Virus record (IMG/VR): IMGVR_UViG_3300046507_000667
Coordinates: 62,001-126,000 of that record
Direction: 5' to 3' (one strand)
Length of the DNA: 64,000 nucleotides
Shown piece after piece: positions 3,040 to 50,752 of the stretch. The position numbers and the translations under genes are program-made. Position 1 is the first letter of the stretch; the number at the start of each line of letters is the position of its first letter. The notes beneath the pieces were generated by a model. It was not told the origin of the DNA and did no database searches. It saw only the letters and a program-made list of their open reading frames with translations.

Positions 3040-4217
3040 ATGGCAATTACAGCTAAAAATCGTAAAAAGGCAGAGAAGTTAATCCTTGATACTTTAAGTA
3101 AGCTTGAGCCATCAGGTATGAATACCGAGAAGTATCGAAAGATCTTCTCGGAAATGTCGGATAAACAGTTCGTAGATTACTTCAAAAAACTTAAAGAAGA
3201 TCGTAATGCACACTTATATGTGGAGTGTGACTTATACGGTAAAAATCAGATTACTTTAGGATCAATCCAAAAAGCTGCTGATTTCTTGAAAGTACCTTTA
3301 GAAGAATATGTTTATATTCGACATAAAACACCTGATGGAACTCCTATCAGAAGTAAGTTCCGTGTACCGGTGATGTATATTCATTTGAAGCGTAATTGCG
3401 CCCATATACTAGAAATAGTGTATGCGTATTACATTAATTGCTGGAAGTCCCTAAAGCTAGTTTAATCTAGATTGAGTATAGCCAAAAGCTATATTTCTAT
3501 ACAATGGGTAATCAGCAGCACTATTTTAACTTATACTTTACCTCGTAAAAATAAATAGTGTTCAACGACTATTCCTGCAATGGAAGTACATATCAAGTGA
3601 TATGGAAATGTGTAATATCCTTCTAGGATAATGATATAGTCTCTTCTTATGTGAAAGCATAAGCTGATAGTTAACAACTATCAATAAGATTAAGTATGCA
3701 ACAGATCCAGACTAAGAAAGTCAAGACTTCTATTGATATTGAATCTGGTAATGTACGTTCGAATATTACTGGTAACTTAAATCAAGATAATAAGTCGGGC
3801 CGATTCACTGATGCAGATACACAAGCTTTTCTATCTATCTTATCTGATAAGAAACTTGAAATTGGAAAGACTGGTAAGAAAGAATCTGCTATTCTTAATG
3901 AATTACTATTGGCTCGTGGTGGTAATGCTGCTATGAAAGCTGCAATGTCAAAGAATATTTCACTCTTTGGCGCTGCTTCCCTACAAGACGTTGATGTAGG
4001 TACATCATATGCAGCAGTATCACCGGGAATTAGTAGTGCATCAGCTATTACAGCAGAACCAGCTAAGAATACTATTGATGCATTCTTAATTGGTGCTGGT
4101 ATGAAGTCTGACATCATCTATAAGTCATTAGTTACACTACAAGGTGAAGCTAGTAAGTCTGAAGGTGGTGATGGTGATGAATTTGCATCATTAAGCAGAG
4201 CATTAGGTCGTGAATAA
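3040..4217 (+). CDS. RNA polymerase beta-like C-terminal subunit, probably virion RNAP; join(3040..3393,3699..4217), about 290 aa
   Basis: Joined sequence MYIHLKR|QQIQTKK...GRFTDADTQAFL resembles the beta C-terminal YMLKL..H....K...GGQRFGEME..AL region; two ORFs separated by an intron core. Confidence 0.7.
3394..3698 (+). ncRNA. Group I intron (IA2-like), ORF-less, cis
   Basis: P1 GCGU/GCGC; P2 with GAAA loop; P AATTGCTGGAA; Q AATCAGCAGC; P6a CACTATTT/AAATAGTG; R TTCAACGACTA; S GATATAGTC. Confidence 0.9.
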
Positions 4218-9419: not shown

Positions 9420-10838
9420 TCACGATCTAAAATGTCTTAAAGGGTCAGCACTAGCTTTACCAGCTAGCATATTGGCTAAATTAGTATCGATACCACTTGA
9501 CTGTGGTCCCTTTACCTTATTATTTTTCTGTCCTAGAATCTTAGCTAGCTGGTCTGGTGGTACACCGTCTAGGATCATTTGGGTTAGTTCAGCAAAGTCA
9601 TGATTTTGACCCTTATTAACTGCAGGATCATCCACAACTTTTCGAGTAATAGCATTGAAATTCTTAGCATTTTGAGCAACTTTAGCTCGTGTTCTTAAGA
9701 ATCTACCAATATTATTACCATATCGAACTACATATTTTACGAATAAGTATGAGAATAAGACGTCATCATGCATACCTACTTCGTGGTCAATACGTCCATT
9801 CTTATAGATAAGACCTTTGACATCATCATATAACTCTGGAATTGCTAAAAGCTCAGGTTCATCTGCAACGATTTCTTTAAGAATATCGATCATTAGAGGA
9901 CGTGAGGCTTTATCAGTAGTAATACCATACTTAATACTATCTGTCTTAGTAGCAGGATTATTAGCTGTTTTGTCTTTATCAGCTAATTTATATTCATAGT
10001 AAATATTCTTAGGAATTACATCTAAGAGATTTTCTACCAGACCTTTACCATAACTATTAAATTCAGGGACTACAATACAGTTAGGCAATTCTTCTTGAAC
10101 TAGCTGTGCAATAAGAGAGCTATATACATTAATATCAATAGTATTATGCTTAAATACTGCTACAGGAGCAAAATCTTTTTCAGGATCAGTAATAGTAAAT
10201 GCTGAATTATCTGCATCAAGACCACCTGCAGTATCAACACCCATGAAATAGACTTTCTCTTTCTTTAGTTCTTCATAGAGTACGATAGGGAATTTGAAAG
10301 TACGGATTTCACCAGTACTCTTGATTACCTTCTTGATATCCATATATTTGATACCAATAGGTGTTCTTTTCTTACTATCAATAATATCTAATTGCTCTTC
10401 AGTAAAGACCGAATTATCTGATGATTTTGTCCATTGTAGGTCAATTTCACGTTTGATAATAGCACGGTCATTATTAAGAACACGACATTCTTTCTTATAC
10501 CACTCTTCATCAAGACCTAATTGTTTCCATGTATAAGAAATATACAAGAAGTCATTTGATGAGTTAGTAGCAATGTAATCTTTTAATATATCACGGTCCC
10601 AATCATACATCTCTTCAACGAAGACACAAGCGTTATCTATAAGACCTTTACAGAAAGCGCCCGCCGGATTGTCAATGTTTGAAGGAGTTGTAGAGATAAT
10701 ACGACCGTGTGGTCTACCATGAGCTTCAGCAATTTCAGATACTTTTGAAATAGCTGGACCTGCTGACTTAAAGATAATATCGTTATACTTTAAGAATGCG
10801 AATTCGTCAGGCCAATAGATCGGGATAGACATACCACG
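9420..10838 (-). CDS. terL: Terminase large subunit exon 2 (Walker B plus RNase H-like nuclease), 472 aa
   Basis: RGMSIPIYWPDEFAF (Walker B), STTP, GVDTAGG, HDDVLFS; starts right after the intron terminal G at 10839. Confidence 0.9.
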   Translation of the reverse strand, partial: RGMSIPIYWPDEFAFLKYNDIIFKSAGPAISKVSEIAEAHGRPHGRIISTTPSNIDNPAGAFCKGLIDNACVFVEEMYDWDRDILKDYIATNSSNDFLYISYTWKQLGLDEEWYKKECRVLNNDRAIIKREIDLQWTKSSDNSVFTEEQLDIIDSKKRTPIGIKYMDIKKVIKSTGEIRTFKFPIVLYEELKKEKVYFMGVDTAGGLDADNSAFTITDPEKDFAPVAVFKHNTIDINVYSSLIAQLVQEELPNCIVVPEFNSYGKGLVENLLDVIPKNIYYEYKLADKDKTANNPATKTDSIKYGITTDKASRPLMIDILKEIVADEPELLAIPELYDDVKGLIYKNGRIDHEVGMHDDVLFSYLFVKYVVRYGNNIGRFLRTRAKVAQNAKNFNAITRKVVDDPAVNKGQNHDFAELTQMILDGVPPDQLAKILGQKNNKVKGPQSSGIDTNLANMLAGKASADPLRHFRS

Positions 10839-10976
10839 CTTATGTTATATGATAATCGTTAATTATCAAGCTTATGCTTTCACATAAGATCAGACTATAT
10901 CTTCACCTGTTAAGGGTTCTACATTTCCATTCTACTTAGAATGTACGTAATAGTCGTTGAACAAATTCATCAAAAT
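10839..10976 (-). ncRNA. 3' half of a group I intron (P6a 3' strand, P7-P9, terminal G)
   Basis: TTGATGAATTTG-TTCAACGACTA...GAAGATATAGTCT-GATCTTATGTGAAAGCATAAGC...CATAAG|CGTGGT. Confidence 0.9.
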
Positions 10977-10987
10977 TTTTGTATGTT
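10976..10987 (-). promoter_or_regulatory. Late-type promoter-like motif for the 3' intron half
   Basis: AACA-TACAAA-AA; AACA exact, -1 position is A rather than T; predicted +1 at 10976. Confidence 0.5.
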
Positions 10988-10989
10988 CC

Positions 10990-11017
10990 AAAAAAAACCT
11001 ATGATTTCTCATAGGTT
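10990..11017 (-). terminator. Intrinsic terminator
   Basis: AACCTATGA-GAAA-TCATAGGTT followed by a T run on the minus strand. Confidence 0.85.
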
Positions 11018-11032
11018 GCTAACTCCTAAGAG

Positions 11033-11662
11033 TTAGACTTCAAAGGTTTGAATGGTAACTCGGAAACGACCCGGAAGAGAATGTACTTCATCCGAATCAA
11101 GAGTTTTGAAAGTATGTGGACTTGACATAACTTTCTTACCAGTCAGTTTACCATCAATCTTTTCGATCATATCTACTACACGATCGTAATGCTCTTTCAG
11201 TTGATCTGCAAAATCTACTTGATCATGCTTATTGCGAAGTTCCCATTCACCATGAAGAAGTTCTTCCAAATAGTGAGGTAGATGTGTAAGGGAATAGTCT
11301 ATGGAAATACCATCCAATCCCTTTTCATCCAATTCTTCTTTCGAAACATCACGAGTTACTGACCAATCAGCAGCATCACTCAGTTGTCCATAGGACGCAT
11401 AAGGATATTGATTATGCCAAACTCGGTCATCGCCAACTATTTGGCTCTTGAAGATAAAGCCATCATGCTTAGGCTCTGCATCTTCACGATCCCATTCATT
11501 ACGAACCTTATGGTGTTCTGTACATTTCAACCAGAAAATGTGAATTCCTTTCAGAGTATTATCCCAAGGGAGATAAGTATTGCTCATCAAAGCATCATTA
11601 CCATTTGCATAATTGAAATGGACACGAATGAACGGAATGATCGAACCGACTTGAAAACGCAT
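11033..11662 (-). CDS. Hypothetical protein, 209 aa
   Basis: ORF with AAGGA SD. Confidence 0.8.
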   Translation of the reverse strand: MRFQVGSIIPFIRVHFNYANGNDALMSNTYLPWDNTLKGIHIFWLKCTEHHKVRNEWDREDAEPKHDGFIFKSQIVGDDRVWHNQYPYASYGQLSDAADWSVTRDVSKEELDEKGLDGISIDYSLTHLPHYLEELLHGEWELRNKHDQVDFADQLKEHYDRVVDMIEKIDGKLTGKKVMSSPHTFKTLDSDEVHSLPGRFRVTIQTFEV

Positions 11663-11688
11663 GATAATTTCCTTAAATAGAAGAATAG

Positions 11689-12060
11689 TTATTTAGGAGC
11701 AGTAAGACGAATTAGCGTCAATTCTGCATCCTTATAGTAGCCATGTGGATCATCCACTGTTCGGCATTGAATTAAAGCTTCTTCCAAGCTAGATGCTTGA
11801 TATTTGAATTCTTTTGTATCTGACCACCTACCTGTAGTTTTTCTTTGGATATGGTAGGTAGCTCTAATATTAGGCCACTTAATACAATGTAGCTCTGATA
11901 CCATACTGATGCCTTTCAATTTCCATTGAGCACCAATTTCGTCTTCCAAGATTCCAACAAGTGTTACTACATGCTCATGTGCTTGAAAATCAGTATCAAT
12001 TAGTTTTAAAGTACCTGTTGGCATAAGCCATTCAGTGAACTGATTGAAACGAGGTTTCAT
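11689..12060 (-). CDS. Hypothetical protein, 123 aa
   Basis: ATGA-coupled ORF. Confidence 0.75.
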   Translation of the reverse strand: MKPRFNQFTEWLMPTGTLKLIDTDFQAHEHVVTLVGILEDEIGAQWKLKGISMVSELHCIKWPNIRATYHIQRKTTGRWSDTKEFKYQASSLEEALIQCRTVDDPHGYYKDAELTLIRLTAPK

Positions 12061-12548
12061 AGCGTAATAGTAACTGCATCAGGAAACAGTTTTTGCAGAT
12101 GATTTTCCATTTCCTTACGACGAGCTTCACGAATATGAAAATCCGAATTTGGCGAATCATCACCAAGAAAGAATTCATATACTCGCTTTGGTTCTTCAAT
12201 TCCTTTTTCTTTTCGAAGCGCTATAAGCTTTTCACGCATAGGAGAAGGAGCATGATAAGTATGAACACGCTTAATTGCTTCATCAATACAATTAGTAATG
12301 GATTCTTCATTATCACCAAAGTATTGACCACTACCTTCTTGATAATTATGTAATTGGCGAATAGCAAAGCTAAATCCACCAACAGTCATAGTACGACGAA
12401 TACGAAGAAGTGATAGGAATCCTCCCGGATTATCCTTTACACCATATTCAATATAATTGAAAAGACCTTCTTTCAAAAGAACCATCATAGATGTCAGTTG
12501 CTTCTTAACTTGAAGTTCCTGATCAATCTTTTCTTGAGTCATCAGCAT
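12057..12548 (-). CDS. Hypothetical protein, 163 aa
   Basis: ORF in a tightly packed operon. Confidence 0.75.
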   Translation of the reverse strand: MLMTQEKIDQELQVKKQLTSMMVLLKEGLFNYIEYGVKDNPGGFLSLLRIRRTMTVGGFSFAIRQLHNYQEGSGQYFGDNEESITNCIDEAIKRVHTYHAPSPMREKLIALRKEKGIEEPKRVYEFFLGDDSPNSDFHIREARRKEMENHLQKLFPDAVTITL

Positions 12549-12554
12549 AATTCT

Positions 12555-12770
12555 TTACCGTTTAATTTCAGGAGGAAGAGCATTATAATAATGATAATTA
12601 GCAAGCCAACCATTAATCAATGCTTTAGCAAGAGTCTCATCTTCAGTGTAATACAATGAAGGCCAAGATTCCTTGACATACATATTGCAAAATCGTTGTC
12701 CAAGGCGAAGTTTATCTTGTTTCCTTGCATTATGGAGACTCAAGAATTTTGCATATGCTTCAGTAGTCAT
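12555..12770 (-). CDS. Hypothetical protein, 71 aa
   Basis: ATGA-coupled ORF. Confidence 0.75.
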   Translation of the reverse strand: MTTEAYAKFLSLHNARKQDKLRLGQRFCNMYVKESWPSLYYTEDETLAKALINGWLANYHYYNALPPEIKR

Positions 12771-13048
12771 TGATCACCCTCATCAAGCCACTTCATAATA
12801 CGTTCAAAAAGCGACTCCTTTACTTCACGAAATTCATTAACACAATGAAATCGCTTCTCTCCAGCACCCATAGTACGAAAGGTAATGCTAAACCAATCTC
12901 CAGTTCGATTATCGAAACAAGGATCGACATACTTAATGGAAGGACGATACTTTCCATTAGGAAGAAGACAAGTCCTAAAAGGACTATTTTCTTCTGCAAC
13001 CTTCTTAAGAACTTGTGTAAGTTCTTCATGGGTCATTGGACGGCTCAT
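12767..13048 (-). CDS. Hypothetical protein, 93 aa
   Basis: ORF with AAGGA SD. Confidence 0.75.
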   Translation of the reverse strand: MSRPMTHEELTQVLKKVAEENSPFRTCLLPNGKYRPSIKYVDPCFDNRTGDWFSITFRTMGAGEKRFHCVNEFREVKESLFERIMKWLDEGDQ

Positions 13049-13057
13049 GTCTTTTCC

Positions 13058-13309
13058 TTAATGACGAATAATTTTGAAATAGTCCGCAGTGATATTACCA
13101 GCACCTTCAAGGCGCTTGCTATTGTGACCAACCACTCCCCACACAATTGAAGCATTTTTATGTGAATCTACACTGTGGGCAGTTACCATAGCACGTTCAA
13201 GTACATCAAAGTTGGCGAACGGTTTGGTAAATTCAATGATACTACCAGTCTTAACGTTCATCTTCTTTCCAAAAATTAAAATGTTTATTAGGAAAGTGGG
13301 AGAGACCAT
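13058..13309 (-). CDS. Hypothetical protein; start possibly at MNVKTG
   Basis: ORF in operon. Confidence 0.65.
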   Translation of the reverse strand: MVSPTFLINILIFGKKMNVKTGSIIEFTKPFANFDVLERAMVTAHSVDSHKNASIVWGVVGHNSKRLEGAGNITADYFKIIRH

Positions 13310-13339
13310 TTAGATCTCTCCCTTCGTCAATCTGCTTGC

Positions 13340-14440
13340 TTATGCAAACGGATTGAAGAATTCATACCAACGACCATGGTTCAGACGATAGCTCGTTTGC
13401 ATGTTACGAAGCTTTTCAGCTTCGGTATACTTCCAATTGAACAGAATGTCCTTGAAGCCTTCGCCCAGCGTTTTCAGGCATTCACCTGCATCACGCAGAA
13501 CATAGAGCGTCTTGTCAACGATAAAACCACAAACCTTCTTGGTCTTATCGATAACATAGACAGTCACCTTCTTGGTACCATTCCATGCATACACACAAAC
13601 CGACTGAACACCTTCAATCGTCCAGTTGATTGCCTTACCAGCACCTTCAACAACGTCACCGCAGAAGTCGCCAATCTTGTCGAGGATCGTAACTTGTTCG
13701 ACCTTCGCATTCACGGCAGCATTTGCAATTTCTTCTTCAACATCGACACCAGCAGCATGCAGTTGCTCTTCGATAGCGCCTTTCAAGATCTCATTGTCCA
13801 CTGCTTCTTGGACCGATTCCGGCTTGGGCATCGATGCTGAAACTGCTTCTTGCACGATTTCCTTTGCGGGAAGATGTGCATGTTCTGCAGCATTAACGAT
13901 GTTAACCATCGCTTCAGCAGCATTAGCTACTTTCGATGCAATCGGACCGAGATCAGCAGATTCCTTCACTGCTTGAACTTGAGCCTTGATATCGACAACT
14001 TCGATATCTTTCGGAAGAATCAGCATGAAAAGTACGTTGTGATGCTTTTCATCGCTCGTAACCGAAACGATTTCTGCATCAGCACCGCATTCATGAGCGA
14101 TGTGTTGAAGACGAACTTCAACTTCATCACCATTGCTAGGTGCTGCAACTTCTTGACCATCGATTTTTGCATCAAGAGAAACATGCAGAATCTGAGCCTG
14201 ATGGCCATTCAGATCAAGTTGTTCTTCAAGTGCAAAGAACGAATCCTTGAACGTTGCTTGATACACTTTCAGCGATTCTTCCAGCTTGGTCAAGCTGAAT
14301 TTCGAAGCATCCGTATTGAAAGTCGGGATGACGACTTTGATGTCCTTCATCGAACGTGCAACCGGTTTCTTAGCCGAAACCTTCTTAGCTGCTGCGTTGA
14401 CGTTACCATTCTTTGCTGCGACGTTGATGTTCTTTGCCAT
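13340..14440 (-). CDS. Hypothetical protein, 366 aa, with Ala/Lys-rich N-terminus and amphipathic repeats near the C-terminus
   Basis: ORF after the early motif at 14524-14532. Confidence 0.85.
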   Translation of the reverse strand: MAKNINVAAKNGNVNAAAKKVSAKKPVARSMKDIKVVIPTFNTDASKFSLTKLEESLKVYQATFKDSFFALEEQLDLNGHQAQILHVSLDAKIDGQEVAAPSNGDEVEVRLQHIAHECGADAEIVSVTSDEKHHNVLFMLILPKDIEVVDIKAQVQAVKESADLGPIASKVANAAEAMVNIVNAAEHAHLPAKEIVQEAVSASMPKPESVQEAVDNEILKGAIEEQLHAAGVDVEEEIANAAVNAKVEQVTILDKIGDFCGDVVEGAGKAINWTIEGVQSVCVYAWNGTKKVTVYVIDKTKKVCGFIVDKTLYVLRDAGECLKTLGEGFKDILFNWKYTEAEKLRNMQTSYRLNHGRWYEFFNPFA

Positions 14441-14579
14441 GATTGAAAGAGACCTTATAGAGAATTAGAAGAGTTATTACTAAGTGTCTTGAATTTCGAA
14501 TATTTCTATTCGTGATCAGGTGAATAATATATCAGCATTATATGCTTTAATACGCTTATTTCACCGGATCATACAAATA

Positions 14580-15176
14580 TTACAAAGAGATAAAGCTACG
14601 TGCATTCAAAAGGAAGTCTTCAAATTCAGGAAGTTCCTTTTGCACATGAAGCAGATTGTTGAAGAGGCTCGTAAGGAATGCTGCCATATCTTCAGAAACT
14701 TCGATAGACGTACGGCCATTCAAACGATATACGATATTGACTTCCTGAACGATACTACAGATAATATCTGAAGCAGCATTAGCAAGATCTTTATCTTCAA
14801 ATCGTTCAATACGAGAAGCAATTGCAAGCAACGTTACAGCCGTATCATTCCAAAGGTGAATTCTCGGAAGATATGCTTCGAAGTTATACTTTAGATAGAT
14901 CTTGAATGATGTCAGATCGACTTCAGTACCTTCTTCCATTGCTCGTTCAATAGCATGCTGAGAAAGACGTGAAAGAGTCTTTTCAATTCTACTATCAGAA
15001 TTATCTCCCAACATACCTTGCTTCTTTAATTCTCCAACGAAATCTTTAATCACTTCATTAGTCTGAAGTTCTTCAAAGAAATTCAGAACACGAGAAGGAT
15101 CTTCCTTATCTAGCTTAATCAGCAGTGCAGCTGCTTTGTTAATGGCTTTATTCGTCAGATTGAAATTCTTCGACAT
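14580..15176 (-). CDS. Hypothetical protein, 198 aa
   Basis: ORF with AAGGA SD. Confidence 0.8.
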   Translation of the reverse strand: MSKNFNLTNKAINKAAALLIKLDKEDPSRVLNFFEELQTNEVIKDFVGELKKQGMLGDNSDSRIEKTLSRLSQHAIERAMEEGTEVDLTSFKIYLKYNFEAYLPRIHLWNDTAVTLLAIASRIERFEDKDLANAASDIICSIVQEVNIVYRLNGRTSIEVSEDMAAFLTSLFNNLLHVQKELPEFEDFLLNARSFISL

Positions 15177-15257
15177 GATTCTTTTTCCTTGAGAATGTTG
15201 GAATGCTTATATTGCGATCAAGGAAAAAATATATACTTATTAGCTATTTAAATACGA

Positions 15258-15491
15258 TTAATCGTTAGTCTGAATATTACCCAATTTCTTGGGAATTAAT
15301 ACTTCCTTAGCTACTTGCTCAAATTCGGGCCATAGCTTACGAAACTTGACAAAAGGAATAGAAATTGTTACTCCTTCAACTTCAATTTCAACTTCACGCT
15401 TTTCTTTATTTGCTTTGATAGATGATGACATTTTCTTTCCTAAATAGTTAACAAAAATCTCGACTCCGCATATCTGGGTCATAGGCACCAA
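15258..15491 (-). CDS. Hypothetical protein; start possibly at MSSSIK
   Basis: ORF after the early motif at 15496-15504. Confidence 0.65.
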   Translation of the reverse strand: MVPMTQICGVEIFVNYLGKKMSSSIKANKEKREVEIEVEGVTISIPFVKFRKLWPEFEQVAKEVLIPKKLGNIQTND

Positions 15492-15525
15492 GATAATAAT
15501 ATATTTCTGAAGTATTAGTTAATGC

Positions 15526-15638
15526 TTGATGAATTTGCTGCTGATTGCCATAGATACTAATTTACATTTTTCCGGAATGCTAGTTAGGATCTTTACGGGG
15601 TTCCAGCAATTAATAGAATTTATACAGAGCCGTAAGTA
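15526..15638 (-). ncRNA. 5' half of a group I intron (P1/IGS, P3-P5, P6a 5' strand)
   Basis: Exon ACAGGGU pairs with IGS GCUCUGU; P AATTGCTGGAAC; Q AATCAGCAGC; ends CAAATTCATCAA. Confidence 0.9.
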
Positions 15639-16307
15639 ACCCTGTTTGTCTGCTTGTTCTTCAGAAATTGGCTGACCATTGACGTCGATCTTATTATTAC
15701 GCTGCACACTATGTACTGATTCAAGATTATCAGTATCACCTCTATCTGCTAAGGCATCTTGAATGTATTTAGGTAAATGTAATGTAATATCCTTAAATCG
15801 CTTTAAGTTATTCTTAGCATCACCTAAGCTCTTATTTGCAAAGAGCATATTAGTATTTTTAGTACTAAAGTTATAGATGTAATTTAGTGCTGCTGCAATA
15901 GAAATTGTTTTACCACGCTGACGAGATAGTAAGCATATCAAGTCAAAGTTATTAAAAATTGCCCAAGTAATAGCTAAGTTACCCGGATGCAATTCAAATT
16001 TAACAGTACCACCCGGAGCTACAATCTTTACTACTTCTCTTAGATAGTAGTAAGGATTTTTTGTAATTTCCGTAATGATTTTTGTCTTTTGTAACTCAGT
16101 TAGATTTTTTCTATGAGGATCAATACCTTTTAAACTTTTATCATAGAGTCGTAGAAAGAACTTGTTATTTTTAATACCACGTTCCTTCAAATACTTAAAC
16201 ATCTTGATGAAAGAAAGGTTCTTAGTCTCGGTGTCAATTACATAGTCACCATAGTCCGTTTCCCCATAGATAGCTTTATTGTAAGCTGCTTTACTAAGCG
16301 ATACCAT
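15639..16307 (-). CDS. terL: Terminase large subunit exon 1 (N-terminal ATPase), 223 aa
   Basis: NPYYYLRE, LHPGNLA, LLSRQRGKT Walker A; coding ends at ...ADKQG where the intron begins. Confidence 0.9.
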
Positions 16308-16335: not shown

Positions 16336-16347
16336 TATGTGAGTGTT
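16336..16347 (-). promoter_or_regulatory. Late-type promoter for terL exon 1
   Basis: AACA-CTCACA-TA. Confidence 0.7.
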
Positions 16348-16434
16348 CAACTTCTCCGTTCACACAAAAAATTCAAGAAAATTGAAAAAAAAAGAAGCCC
16401 CGTTAGAGGCTTCTTCCTAGCTATAAGCTGGAAG

Positions 16435-43100: not shown

Positions 43101-45533
43101 ATAGTTGCCAATGATTTTACCAAAGAGTCTAAAAGGGCTAGATTTTATGATACATGTCCAGCATGTAGAACTTCTAAAAGAAGTCCTTTGGATAAGGTAA
43201 AAGAAGATATCAGAATTGCTACTAAAGATAGATTATTACTTTTAGAATATGGTGGAACAACACATACCCCATCTAAATTTAAATGTAAAATCTGTAATTA
43301 TGATGATATCAAAATATCTACGCATAGTTTATTAGGAAATTTAAAGTCAAGATCAAATTCTAATTCATGGGGATGTGCTGTTTGTTCAAAAAAGAAACAG
43401 AAAACTACTCAAGAATTTAATAAAGAAATTGATCAACTTTTTAATGGTAATATTGCACTTATTTCAGAATATGTAAATGTAGGGACTTATGTATCTTTGA
43501 AATGTAATAAATGTACATATGAATGGAATACCATGCCATCAACTATTCTAGGCGGATCCCAGTGTCCAGCATGCTTAAGAAGTTTTAGAGATTCTAAGCA
43601 AATTAGAAGAGTGATTGAATTTCTTGATAAATATGAAGTACCTTTTGAAAGAGAAGTAACTTTTGAAGGTCTAGTTTATAAAAAGCAACTGTATTTTGAT
43701 TTTTGTATTGAAACAGAAGATACTTATTTCTTGATTGAATTCGATGGACAGCAGCATTTTAGAGGCTGGCAAGGTAATGAAGATAATCTAAATGAAAACC
43801 AAATTCGAGATAATATCAAGAATGATTTTTGTAAAGATAATGATCTTCCTTTACTTCGTTTGCATTATAAAATGACTCTGTCTGAAATTGATAAGGCTAT
43901 TTATGATTTTCTCTTCAGTCCAGAATAAACTTCTTTAATTGCTGGAAACCCTCTAACAAAGGCAATCAGCAGCGAAGCCCTTAATTGGGAACGTTCAACG
44001 ACTATTATGTACTTATCAAATGATAAGGAAATAGGAAGCACCTAATTAGGTGAAGATATAGTCTATTCTTATATGAAAATATAAGTTATGAGCTAATGAC
44101 TCATAGTAAATATAAAAGTAAATTCAGATGATGCATATACGCCTGAAATTCGTGCATATGATAAGTCAATGCTAGGTGTGTATGGTATTTATACGCCTAT
44201 TTCATCACAAGTTGGTGTAAGTCGTGGTCTTGTAATGAATCCACGCTATCATTCAACTCGTGGCTATCTAAAGGATATGGATCTAAAGACTGCTCGTGCT
44301 GATAATTTATTCACTGCGGCAGAACTTCTAAATGTCTTTACACCAAAGCATGCTGATAGTCCTCGTGCTATTATGGCTTCAGTACAAGGTCGTCACTTGA
44401 CACCAACAAAAGTACAGGATCCTTACCTAGTTGGTAGTGGTGTTGATAAAGCACTTCCGCATATGGTTGGTCAAGACTTCGCCTTTAAAGCAACAGATGA
44501 TGGCACAGTTATTAAGATTGACCAGAAGAAAGAACTAGCAATTCTACAATATAAGAATGGCGAGAAAGCAGCAATTGATTTCTCACCAAAACCAGCTAAA
44601 AATAGTGGTGGTGGCTTCTTTATTCAGAATAAGCTTGATCTTAATGCAGAAGTTAAGGTAGGCTATAAATTCAAGAAAGGTGATATTCTTGCTAAGGATG
44701 ATAACTTCTTCAAGGATATGCTAGATGGTTCTACTGGCTTTGCGGCTGGTCGTCTATCAAAGCTTGCTGTTCTCGCTCTACCTGAGACATTCGAAGATTC
44801 GTGTGTTATTACACAACAAGTTGTAAGTGATATGTCATCGGATATTATTAATGAACGTGAAGTAGTTTTAAAGAAAAATTCACGTATCATTAGTGTGGCT
44901 AACGTTGGTGATGAAGTTGAAGTTGATACACCACTAGTTGTATTCGAAGAAGTAGGTTCTGATGAAACATTAGCTGTTGCTGCTTTAGAAAAGCTTGATG
45001 CACAAACTAAAGGCACTATCAGTGAACTAGCTCGTTCGACTGCAAAGTCAAAGTTTGCTGGTAAGATTTTCGCTATTCGTATTTATTACAATGCAGAATT
45101 AGATGAAATGCATCCAACGCTAAAGAATATTGTCGAGCAGTACAAAGACAAATATGATTCTAAGGCAAAGATCATTCAGACACTGAAGAAGGATGAAATT
45201 ATTCAGCAACCTTCAACTGAAAAGCATAATGGTGAAAAGCTATTAGGTAATGATGTTGATGGTGTTGTTATCAAGTTCTTCATCATGCATGATGATAAGA
45301 TGGCTATTGGTTCAAAGGTAACTGCATTCACTTCACTAAAGTGTATTATTGCAGAGACTATTCCAGAAGGAAAGGAACCATATACAGAGTACAATAAGGA
45401 TGAAGAACTATCAATGTTCCTAAGTCCATTATCTATTGTCTCTCGTATGACTACTGACTTCTATCTCTTAGGCTTTAGTAATAAAGTTATTATTGAACTA
45501 GAGAATCAAGTATTAGATCTTCTAGAAGAATAA
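40168..45533 (+). CDS. Large RNA polymerase beta-like subunit, probably virion RNAP; join(40168..42916,44119..45533), about 1387 aa
   Basis: GFLYINGNK, spliced FKGPSGLNSDDAYT, DSPRAIMASVQGRH, TFEDS.VI, GSKV....LKC.I, SPLSIVSRM motifs. Confidence 0.88.
42917..44118 (+). mobile_element. Group I intron carrying a homing endonuclease in the P1 loop
   Basis: Exon UCUGGAU pairs with IGS GUCCAGA (43918-43924); P, Q, R and S elements at about 43935-44060; terminal G at 44118 restores the frame. Confidence 0.9.
42957..43928 (+). CDS. Intron-encoded homing endonuclease: Zn-ribbon repeats plus Vsr/PD-(D/E)XK-like domain
   Basis: Repeated C..C units; FEREVTF...FDF...LIEFDGQQHF C-terminal nuclease motif. 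Confidence 0.8.
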   Translation: MRKALTTEKFQENVNTIFGADTYTVISEYTKSSGYISIKHSKCGNTFDIVANDFTKESKRARFYDTCPACRTSKRSPLDKVKEDIRIATKDRLLLLEYGGTTHTPSKFKCKICNYDDIKISTHSLLGNLKSRSNSNSWGCAVCSKKKQKTTQEFNKEIDQLFNGNIALISEYVNVGTYVSLKCNKCTYEWNTMPSTILGGSQCPACLRSFRDSKQIRRVIEFLDKYEVPFEREVTFEGLVYKKQLYFDFCIETEDTYFLIEFDGQQHFRGWQGNEDNLNENQIRDNIKNDFCKDNDLPLLRLHYKMTLSEIDKAIYDFLFSPE

Positions 45534-45675
45534 TACAAAACTTAAATTCCCCTATACTCTAACATTGGAGTATAGGGGATATTTTTGTGTGATCCGATAA
45601 CATGCTTTATTTCAAGGATATATTATTTGAGTGGATAGAAGTACATGACTCTCTTAATAATTCAGAAGGTATACT

Positions 45676-47403: not shown

Positions 47404-47507
47404 TCTCTAAGAAAGTCTCAACCTTCGAAAGAGGGTTGAGATAGTACTCTACCTTTAGTATCCTCGATTAGATCAAACAAGAGAATACTAATTCTAGAGT
47501 ACTAAGA

Positions 47508-47581
47508 GCGACTATAGTTCAGACGGATAGAACACAAGCCTTCTAAGCTTGGGGTCACTGGTTCGAATCCAGTTAGTCGCA
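47508..47581 (+). tRNA. tRNA-Arg(UCU), CCA not encoded
   Basis: Acceptor GCGACTA/TAGTCGC; anticodon arm CAAGC-CTTCTAA-GCTTG; T arm GGTTCGAATCC; late motif at 47476-47487. Confidence 0.92.
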
Positions 47582-48679: not shown

Positions 48680-48817
48680 GTAGTGTTTGATTCCCTAACC
48701 TTCGAAAGAGGGTTAGGGAATATATTCTAATGTATTTCTTTTTATGTATTAGAATTGCATTAAAGTATATATTATTTGAGTGAAGTAATTATAACTCTTT
48801 TAACTAAAGGAAAGAAG

Positions 48818-49345: not shown

Positions 49346-49397
49346 TTGAAGTAATAAGAGCCAGAAATTTCTGGCTTTCTTTTTTCTTGAAAAGAAT

Positions 49398-49749: not shown

Positions 49750-49960
49750 TAGTTATGCGGTTGAGCCTTGCGGTTCTGGTCGGTTGGCATGATTGTCTCC
49801 TTTCTCCTTGTGGTTGAGTAGGTGAATCCTAGTTCTTTTGGTTTTCATATTCCTCCTTTGTTGTTGACCTTTTGTAAAGCTTCGTCCCTTTACTTATTGA
49901 ACTAGGTAGTAACCACTTCTTTTATCCCATATCCCTCTACAAAGGGATATGGGATTTTTT
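49750..49960 (+). ncRNA. Candidate structured small RNA with repeated CUCCUU motifs
   Basis: Intergenic; long-range stem CCTAGTTC/GAACTAGG and GTGGTT/AACCAC; ends in hairpin plus T tract at 49925-49960. Confidence 0.4.
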
Positions 49961-50700: not shown

Positions 50701-50752
50701 TTAATATACCCTAACTCTCACTTCCGAGGGTTAGGGTTCTTTCTAGTTAAAA

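Follow-up and report, generated by a model that had tools for sequence, protein, structure and literature searches.

A group I intron predicted to hold a nine-ORF cassette in its P6 loop within the terminase gene of a phiR1-37-like jumbo phage

Group I introns are common in terL, the phage gene for the large terminase subunit, and here we describe one that is predicted to interrupt terL in a stretch of 64,000 nucleotides (nt) from the 249 kb contig IMG/VR UViG_3300046507_000667 (positions 62,001 to 126,000; hereafter the window), its two ribozyme halves standing apart on either side of a cargo of open reading frames (ORFs). The closest described case, which turned up in our literature check, is the intron of g189, the gene for the virion RNA polymerase beta subunit of Bacillus phage AR9, an intron that carries an early promoter and g190 in L6 and has been annotated as an ordinary one (PMC5312081). 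As in the window, a late gene is interrupted by an intron whose L6 loop carries an early promoter and a gene; we could confirm its anatomy, with the promoter directly after the P6 5' strand and a 9-bp P6 flanking the insert, and like the window intron it falls into two Rfam half-matches (30.7 and 48.6 bits). It differs in that its insert of about 0.8 kb encodes one HNH homing endonuclease and has no terminator before the P6 3' strand, whereas the window intron holds nine non-endonuclease ORFs in 4.55 kb, two early promoters, a terminator and a P6 of 12–14 bp. Intron 1 of terL in AR9 and Bacillus phage PBS1 shares the insertion site of the window intron (after ..GGT, before CGTGG) and a homologous core (82 bits with Rfam), but has a short P6 hairpin and no cargo. 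The T4 td intron, also a phage intron of the IA type, carries the I-TevI ORF with its own promoter in the P6a loop. Split in L6a it reportedly trans-splices in vitro, as Galloway Salvo et al. are said to have found in 1990; the H1 and H2 RNAs of this laboratory split measure 131 and 147 nt, compared with 113 nt (5') and 135 nt (3') for the window halves. Its natural splicing is in cis, however, within an intron of roughly 1 kb that has no terminator, and the split form is engineered and needs heat or chaperones. The window intron thus resembles the td and g189 type in having ORFs with their own promoter in a peripheral loop, yet none of these ORFs matched an endonuclease.

In the open-access papers and bioRxiv preprints that we searched, all reports of natural trans-spliced group I introns come from mitochondria, where they interrupt cox1, rns and rnl in Trichoplax, Isoetes, Helicosporidium, Gigaspora and Prasinoderma, some with both pieces on one strand and a gene between them (PMC3873408). 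An earlier sequence-only reading of the window regarded its intron as probably trans-splicing and pointed to such introns in organelles; the same sources give none from phages or bacteria. Like the window intron, the organellar ones are bipartite, and the break falls in a loop that accommodates an ORF in their cis relatives; in the window, nine ORFs separate the halves and the break falls in L6, the loop that holds g190 in AR9. The organellar introns are broken in L8, L9 or after P9.1 rather than in L6, and their pieces are often dispersed or on opposite strands, while the window halves are collinear and known here from sequence alone.

In the window, exon 1 of terL ends with CAGGGT at 15639, the intron extends from 15638 to a terminal G at 10839, and exon 2 starts with C10838; the two exons join in frame to 223 + 472 = 695 amino acids (aa). 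All coordinates given in the earlier reading proved correct, and so did the joined product. Both pieces are identified as TerL by profile comparison (PHROG 32359 at E 4e-90 and phrog_2), while Pfam gave no match for the exon pieces or the cargo and a PDB sequence search with both exon pieces returned nothing useful. The proposed junction is borne out by intron-less relatives: in L004, BpSp, Goe21, Staphylococcus phage S6 and many IMG/VR loci the N- and C-terminal TerL matches abut precisely at this point, and in L004, the closest of them, as in dozens more, the two parts are contiguous at ..ADKxG followed by RG... Removal of the intron gives back an uninterrupted conserved TerL protein, the split falling between Walker A and Walker B of one ATPase fold.

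The Rfam model RF00028 matches the 3' half with 36.3 bits (E 1.6e-6) and the 5' half with just 17.1 bits (E 0.9), so that neither reaches the gathering score of 50 as a contiguous match; for the 3' half this is because only half of the model is present, the core being cut by 4.55 kb. In a nhmmer search whose profile combined five cis introns of unrelated genomes, represented by their 5' parts, the 5' half is the top match of the window (E 5.9e-8). The earlier proposal that each terL piece carries half of one group I ribozyme therefore holds, both halves being significant separately. The window also contains two complete cis group I introns, at 3382-3663 (+, 69.8 bits) and 43854-44085 (+, 94.5 bits), which split the ORF pairs 3040-3465/3696-4217 and 42957-43928/44169-45533 and whose cores are paralogous to that of the terL intron. 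Concatenated, the two terL halves align collinearly over their whole length with both of these cis introns and with AR9 terL intron 1. The conserved core comprises P3–P9 with the R and S elements that mark group I introns; directly readable from the sequence are a P1 whose splice site carries a U.G pair and, as already proposed by the earlier reading, a 5-bp P10 with the start of exon 2. P1 is also predicted by cofolding, and the U.G pair, the terminal G and a possible P10 recur in all nine phages that share the layout described below. On these grounds we assign the interruption as a genuine IA-type group I intron that is the orthologue of AR9 terL intron 1. Its 5' half ends in CAAATTCATCAA (15537-15526), and the exact complement TTGATGAATTTG (10973-10962) opens the 3' half. 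AR9 terL intron 1 and the two cis introns of the window have a short P6/P6a hairpin where the terL intron is broken, as had been claimed for the cis introns, which places the predicted break in the P6/P6a loop.

The phage represented by the window is a jumbo phage present in rhizosphere metagenomes, and by sequence comparison we class it as kin to Yersinia phage phiR1-37, with AR9 and PBS1 as more distant relatives; a megablast search of the region against GenBank phages gave zero matches. When short proteins were searched with the exon-1 protein, 27 free-standing N-terminal TerL pieces were recovered; together with the IMG/VR locus L006, they led to nine phages of the same layout: the window phage, phiR1-37 (L001), L006, L260, L262/L263, L265, L266, L267 and L268. 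Their order is constant, with P4', the P6 5' strand, an early promoter, same-strand cargo, a hairpin with T-run, the P6 3' strand and the R element following one another, and wherever the length of a contig allows this to be assessed, halves and cargo prove collinear and share one orientation. The cargo itself ranges from 0.95 to 4.55 kb and differs in content: one fast-evolving protein family is common to L006, L265, L266 and L268 and weakly to L260, the cargoes of phiR1-37, L262, L267 and the window are unrelated at the BLAST level, and no endonuclease domain was found in the cargo of phiR1-37 or L006. Among the eight relatives, L267 alone has a spacer between the T-run and the P6 3' strand, which is 8 nt long and contains no AACA motif; in the other seven the two are directly adjacent. 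Further searching of metagenomes added little. An exact 14-mer scan of IMG/VR yielded chance matches for the most part, and of the 62 loci from a gapped pattern scan of metagenome contigs a single short phiR1-37-like fragment was relevant, the remainder belonging to the same intron family in other genes and serving as cis comparators. The sequencing runs with matches were rhizosphere DNA metagenomes and one RNA run, in which a 248-nt contig of exon 2 from a relative ends 24 nt short of the junction.

Further terL introns were noted among these loci. L262 (about 11825-11860), L266 and L267 carry a second cis group I intron 12–13 codons downstream, after W.DE, which leaves a terL mini-exon of 36–39 nt. 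At this second site, L264 (8700-9420) has an intron with an inverted cassette in L6 and the P6 pair CTCTATA/TATAGAG; here an opposite-strand early promoter lies by the P6 3' strand and is followed by a 114-aa ORF (9198-8854), while a two-way hairpin adjoins the P6 5' strand.

Within the window, the helix of 12 bp between the halves extends to 14 bp; its duplex energy is -17 kcal/mol, and its cofold gain of -14.6 kcal/mol compares with -5.9 +/- 2.3 in shuffled sequences. P1, P4-P5 and the intermolecular P6 were predicted in all three phages that were cofolded (the window phage, phiR1-37 and L006). The earlier reading had described one intron joined by this 12-bp helix across 4.55 kb; the helix is real, but the description was incomplete, as a second helix between the halves, the 5-bp P3, had been overlooked. 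Both helices were tabulated by hand from the printed sequences of the phages with this layout. P6 occurs in seven different sequences with 8–13 perfect pairs each, including a compensatory double change from A-U to G-C between L006/L268 and L265/L266, and P3 occurs in four versions, all of them paired (TTCTA/TAGAA, TTCCG/CGGAA, TACC(A)/(T)GGTA and CACTA/TAGTG). Because P3 and P6 covary across phages, the split arrangement is likely to be functional. In phiR1-37, L006, L262, L265/L266 and L268 the outer 3–5 pairs of P6 are formed by the terminator U-tract with an A-run that follows the P6 5' strand, and in L260 about two pairs come from the U-tract. Cis members of the intron family have instead a 2-bp P6, an internal loop and a P6a of roughly 6 bp.

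As promoters and terminators were assigned by motif, the transcriptional layout is a predicted one. Both promoter classes of AR9, early and late (AACA-6N-TA/G; PMC5312081), appear to be present in the window phage. The early motif ATATATTAT-6N-G occurs in 16 copies in the window against 2.9 expected, on the coding strand without exception and with a (C/T)GTAT element about 22–25 nt upstream, and matches the promoter of the AR9 virion RNA polymerase. The late motif AACA-N6-TA, mostly followed by G, stands before many genes (at least 18 sites ahead of genes) and is under-represented elsewhere in the window; TA is found in 33 of the 33 late-motif sites listed, in a search that itself demanded the T.

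The ribozyme halves enclose nine ORFs, all on the same strand, together with two early promoters and a single strong terminator, from which a 16-nt spacer leads to the P6 3' strand (Table 1). The ORFs are tightly packed, each with an AAGGA-type ribosome-binding site. Pfam, NCBIfam and homing-endonuclease searches of all nine returned no match to any named family, the 209-aa ORF having hypothetical homologues in other large phages, and BLAST found no similarity between the cargo ORFs of the window and those of its relatives. The last ~55 residues of the 366-aa ORF (13343-14440, -) weakly resemble the C-terminus of the cargo family of L006, L265, L266 and L268 (hhalign E 0.007), so these may represent a very diverged common cargo gene.

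Table 1. Features of the split terL locus and related motifs in the window (promoters and terminators predicted from motifs).
Feature	Position	Strand	Details
Intrinsic terminator closing the upstream transcription unit	16389..16418	-	12-13 bp stem, then T-run
terL late promoter (non-virion RNA polymerase), AACA-N6-TA(G)	16336..16347	-	matches AR9 late consensus
terL exon 1	15639..16307	-	223 codons; Walker A-like SRQRGKT; last base is the U of the U.G pair
Intron 5' half	15526..15638	-	P1 loop and guide 15638-15624; P3 5' strand 15618-15614; P4-P5-P4'; P6 5' strand 15537-15526
Early promoter 1 (virion RNA polymerase), ATATATTAT-6N-G	15489..15504	-	directly after P6 5' strand
Cargo	11033..15482	-	nine ORFs: 74, 198, 366, 83, 93, 71, 163, 123, 209 aa
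Early promoter 2	14517..14532	-	before the 366-aa ORF
Strong intrinsic terminator, cargo end	10990..11017	-	9-bp stem and T-run
AACA-N6-AA motif, doubtful late promoter	10976..10987	-	between terminator and P6 3' strand
Intron 3' half	10839..10973	-	P6 3' strand 10973-10962; R 10961-10951; P7.1/7.2; P3 3' strand 10921-10917
Intron 3' half, remaining parts		-	P8; S element 10904-10892; P9 and P9.x; terminal G 10839
terL exon 2	9420..10838	-	472 codons and stop; begins RGMSIPIYWPDE, Walker B acidic pair
Early promoter motif examples	15504-15496, 14532-14524, 21771-21763, 48767-48775		
Terminators directly before promoterless genes	49357-49378, 49924-49955, 50709-50736 (+); 24853-24823, 60216-60189 (-)		

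A metagenomic origin raises the question of misassembly, or of a recent insertion that inactivated terL, and assembly graphs do break at the repeated intron core near 10871-10908. The region is nevertheless tiled by a 3.7 kb contig (10872-14584), a 3.75 kb contig covering 15046-16400 and a 521-nt linker (14555-15075), which show no differences at about 240–290x depth, and the same sequence is found in several samples. The layout also recurs in the cultured phiR1-37 and seven other phages, and by this conservation an artefact or a decaying gene, which we consider hardly credible, is effectively refuted. One DNA contig joining 10903 to 15593 was considered as an insert-free variant and rejected as a paralogous intron or graph artefact, as it has 32 nt on one side and lies in the repeated core.

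In phiR1-37, terL is cut at the same codon, with g143, the 5' half, an RNA-seq-verified promoter, g144, a terminator, the 3' half and g145 in succession, and the predicted junction joins ..AAACAGGGT to CGTGGTATG.. (genome AJ972879); in the phiR1-37 paper texts that were searched an intron is nowhere mentioned. Dividing the total gene reads of the published supplementary Table S2 by gene length (RNA-seq, GEO GSE77068) gives ~1.2 reads/nt for g143, ~124 for g144 and ~1.5 for g145. With ~196,000 total reads, g144 (L001 7230-8810) exceeds the terL exons on either side ~100-fold in reads per nucleotide, and its read count lies far above that of every other of the roughly 90 gene rows of Table S2 examined; its protein has no family match. 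Since phiR1-37 grows in culture, forming plaques, and terminase is essential, the arrangement must deliver TerL.

It could do so without any splicing if the two terL pieces were translated separately into a two-subunit terminase, in the way that the RNA polymerase subunits of these phages are split. Exon 1 begins with a start codon of its own and runs to an in-frame stop, which in phiR1-37 is a TAA immediately at the junction; an ATG lies three codons into exon 2, and phiR1-37 g143 and g145 are annotated separately. An AACA-N6-TG motif (10846-10835, -) furthermore spans the 3' splice site, with no ribosome-binding site after it. The methionine of exon 2, however, is also present in intron-less relatives and hence ancestral, and no AAGGA ribosome-binding site precedes this internal ATG at 10832, while exon 1 and all nine cargo ORFs, like every other gene here, have one. 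Two polypeptides would divide a single ATPase fold between its Walker motifs and would leave the conserved ribozyme halves, with their compensatory changes in P3 and P6 in nine phages, unexplained. As promoter of an RNA for exon 2 only, the motif at the splice site was dropped as a general feature, as it is not conserved in relatives, where its spacing is absent. Given the missing ribosome-binding site and the ancestral ATG, RNA splicing appears much more likely than two separately translated polypeptides, which we regard as very improbable.

For the route of splicing we favor, with a probability of about 0.5, a single read-through precursor that is spliced in cis across a giant loop; such a precursor would be sufficient as the baseline route, to which assembly from two RNAs may be added. 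Early in infection, the virion RNA polymerase would start at both internal promoters and generate abundant cargo mRNA ending at 11017-10990, where the cargo terminator would shield exon 2 from early transcription. Late in infection, the non-virion polymerase would start from 16347-16336 and transcribe exon 1, the 5' half and the cargo, and some polymerases would continue beyond the terminator, adding the 3' half and exon 2 to the transcript. In this read-through RNA, the 12–14 bp P6 and the 5-bp P3 would close the 4.55 kb loop and the core would fold; guanosine attack after U15639 and ligation to C10838 would then give the mRNA for the 695-aa TerL.

Both halves and the nine ORFs lie on one strand in order, and no terminator follows the 5' half. 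With the T-run directly adjoining the P6 3' strand, seven of eight relatives have no room for a promoter there, and their 3' halves are probably reachable only by read-through. Read-through also seems to be a normal part of expression in the window phage, as genes without a recognisable promoter of their own follow 5 of the ~16 strong terminators found on the coding strand in the window (Table 1); one of these terminators (60216-60189, -) sits between a late promoter (60242-60231) and its gene. For the inverted cassette of L264, a scan for the promoter motif on the sense strand found none, so that upstream read-through is the sole evident route to its 3' half. The near-equal levels of g143 and g145 in phiR1-37 are compatible with co-transcription or with a ligated product.

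Several points weigh against splicing in cis as the principal route. A strong terminator stands just before the 3' half in all nine phages, AR9 is reported to terminate strongly at the predicted terminators of all operons, and reads per nucleotide in phiR1-37 fall ~100-fold from g144 to g145; if the late polymerase stopped as often, ~1% of terL transcripts would be competent for cis splicing. About 100 s would pass between the synthesis of the two halves, and the unusually long uninterrupted P6 would also suit assembly of two molecules. Furthermore, the frame of exon 1 stays open for another 39 codons, across P1-P6 of the 5' half, and closes with a TAA at 15521-15519, so that ribosomes translating exon 1 could unfold the whole 5' half in the window phage; ribosomes that enter intron cores impair splicing. 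In phiR1-37, AR9, L260, L267 and L268, unlike the window, a TAA comes right after the splice site.

With trans-splicing as the main route, most late terL RNAs would end at the cargo terminator and thus carry exon 1 and the 5' half alone, and the partners with the 3' half and exon 2 would be separate RNAs, arising by read-through from the highly active early promoters or, in the window, starting at the AACA motif 10987-10976; the two RNAs would pair through P6 and P3 and splice between molecules. The strong terminator directly before the 3' half in 9 of 9 phages, together with the strong termination reported in AR9, speaks for this, and 1% read-through from the phiR1-37 g144 promoter would provide as much exon-2 RNA as there is exon-1 RNA. 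P6 of the window is continuous over 12–14 bp, whereas P6/P6a of the cis relatives is interrupted, and the AACA motif of the spacer is placed where late promoters usually come after terminators. A precedent exists in vitro, where according to PMC3201874 the T4 td intron split in L6a (131 + 147 nt) trans-splices, though these RNAs required 55 °C or RNA chaperones. The AACA motif, on the other hand, has an A at the conserved T, and its AACA core has a 5% likelihood of occurring there by chance; 7 of 8 relatives have no space for a promoter (in L267 the spacer is 8 nt), so each 3' piece needs read-through. No dedicated 3'-end signal follows the 5' half, halves that are dispersed or inverted, as in typical organellar trans-spliced introns, were seen in none of the relatives, and the similar g143 and g145 levels equally fit a spliced or a co-transcribed RNA. 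That terL mRNA in the phiR1-37-like jumbo clade is made mainly by intermolecular splicing is a possibility we would put forward tentatively, at somewhat less than even odds. The collinear halves, the absence of a terminator after the 5' half and the doubtful promoter before the 3' half leave the wording "probably trans-splicing" unsupported, and cis splicing of a read-through precursor is at least as likely.

New with respect to the introns described so far are the non-endonuclease cargo of up to nine genes, the fusion of a terminator to the P6 3' strand, the lengthened P6 and the conservation of the layout throughout a clade, which together make bimolecular splicing a live possibility. They suggest that the loop of a group I intron can be a stable expression site for ordinary phage genes beyond homing endonucleases, and that the ribozyme may stay functional across 1–4.6 kb by means of a helix that in most relatives derives partly from the terminator U-tract. 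For phiR1-37, whose annotation treats g143 and g145 as separate genes, this amounts to a correction, and with its public RNA-seq data this phage offers a culturable system for asking about natural group I trans-splicing in a bacterial cell. Should intermolecular splicing hold true, a natural group I intron would for the first time be known to trans-splice outside organelles, and terminase production would be tied to both transcription programmes.

Elsewhere in the window, late promoters of the AACA-N6-TA type lie inside terminator hairpins at 7830-7802 (-), 28191-28180 (-) and 45548-45579 (+). As the predicted start falls in the loop or 3' arm, transcripts from these promoters would not contain the 5' arm and would escape termination. 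A tRNA gene is found at 47508-47581 (+, 72 bits), with a late-promoter motif ahead of it at 47476-47487.

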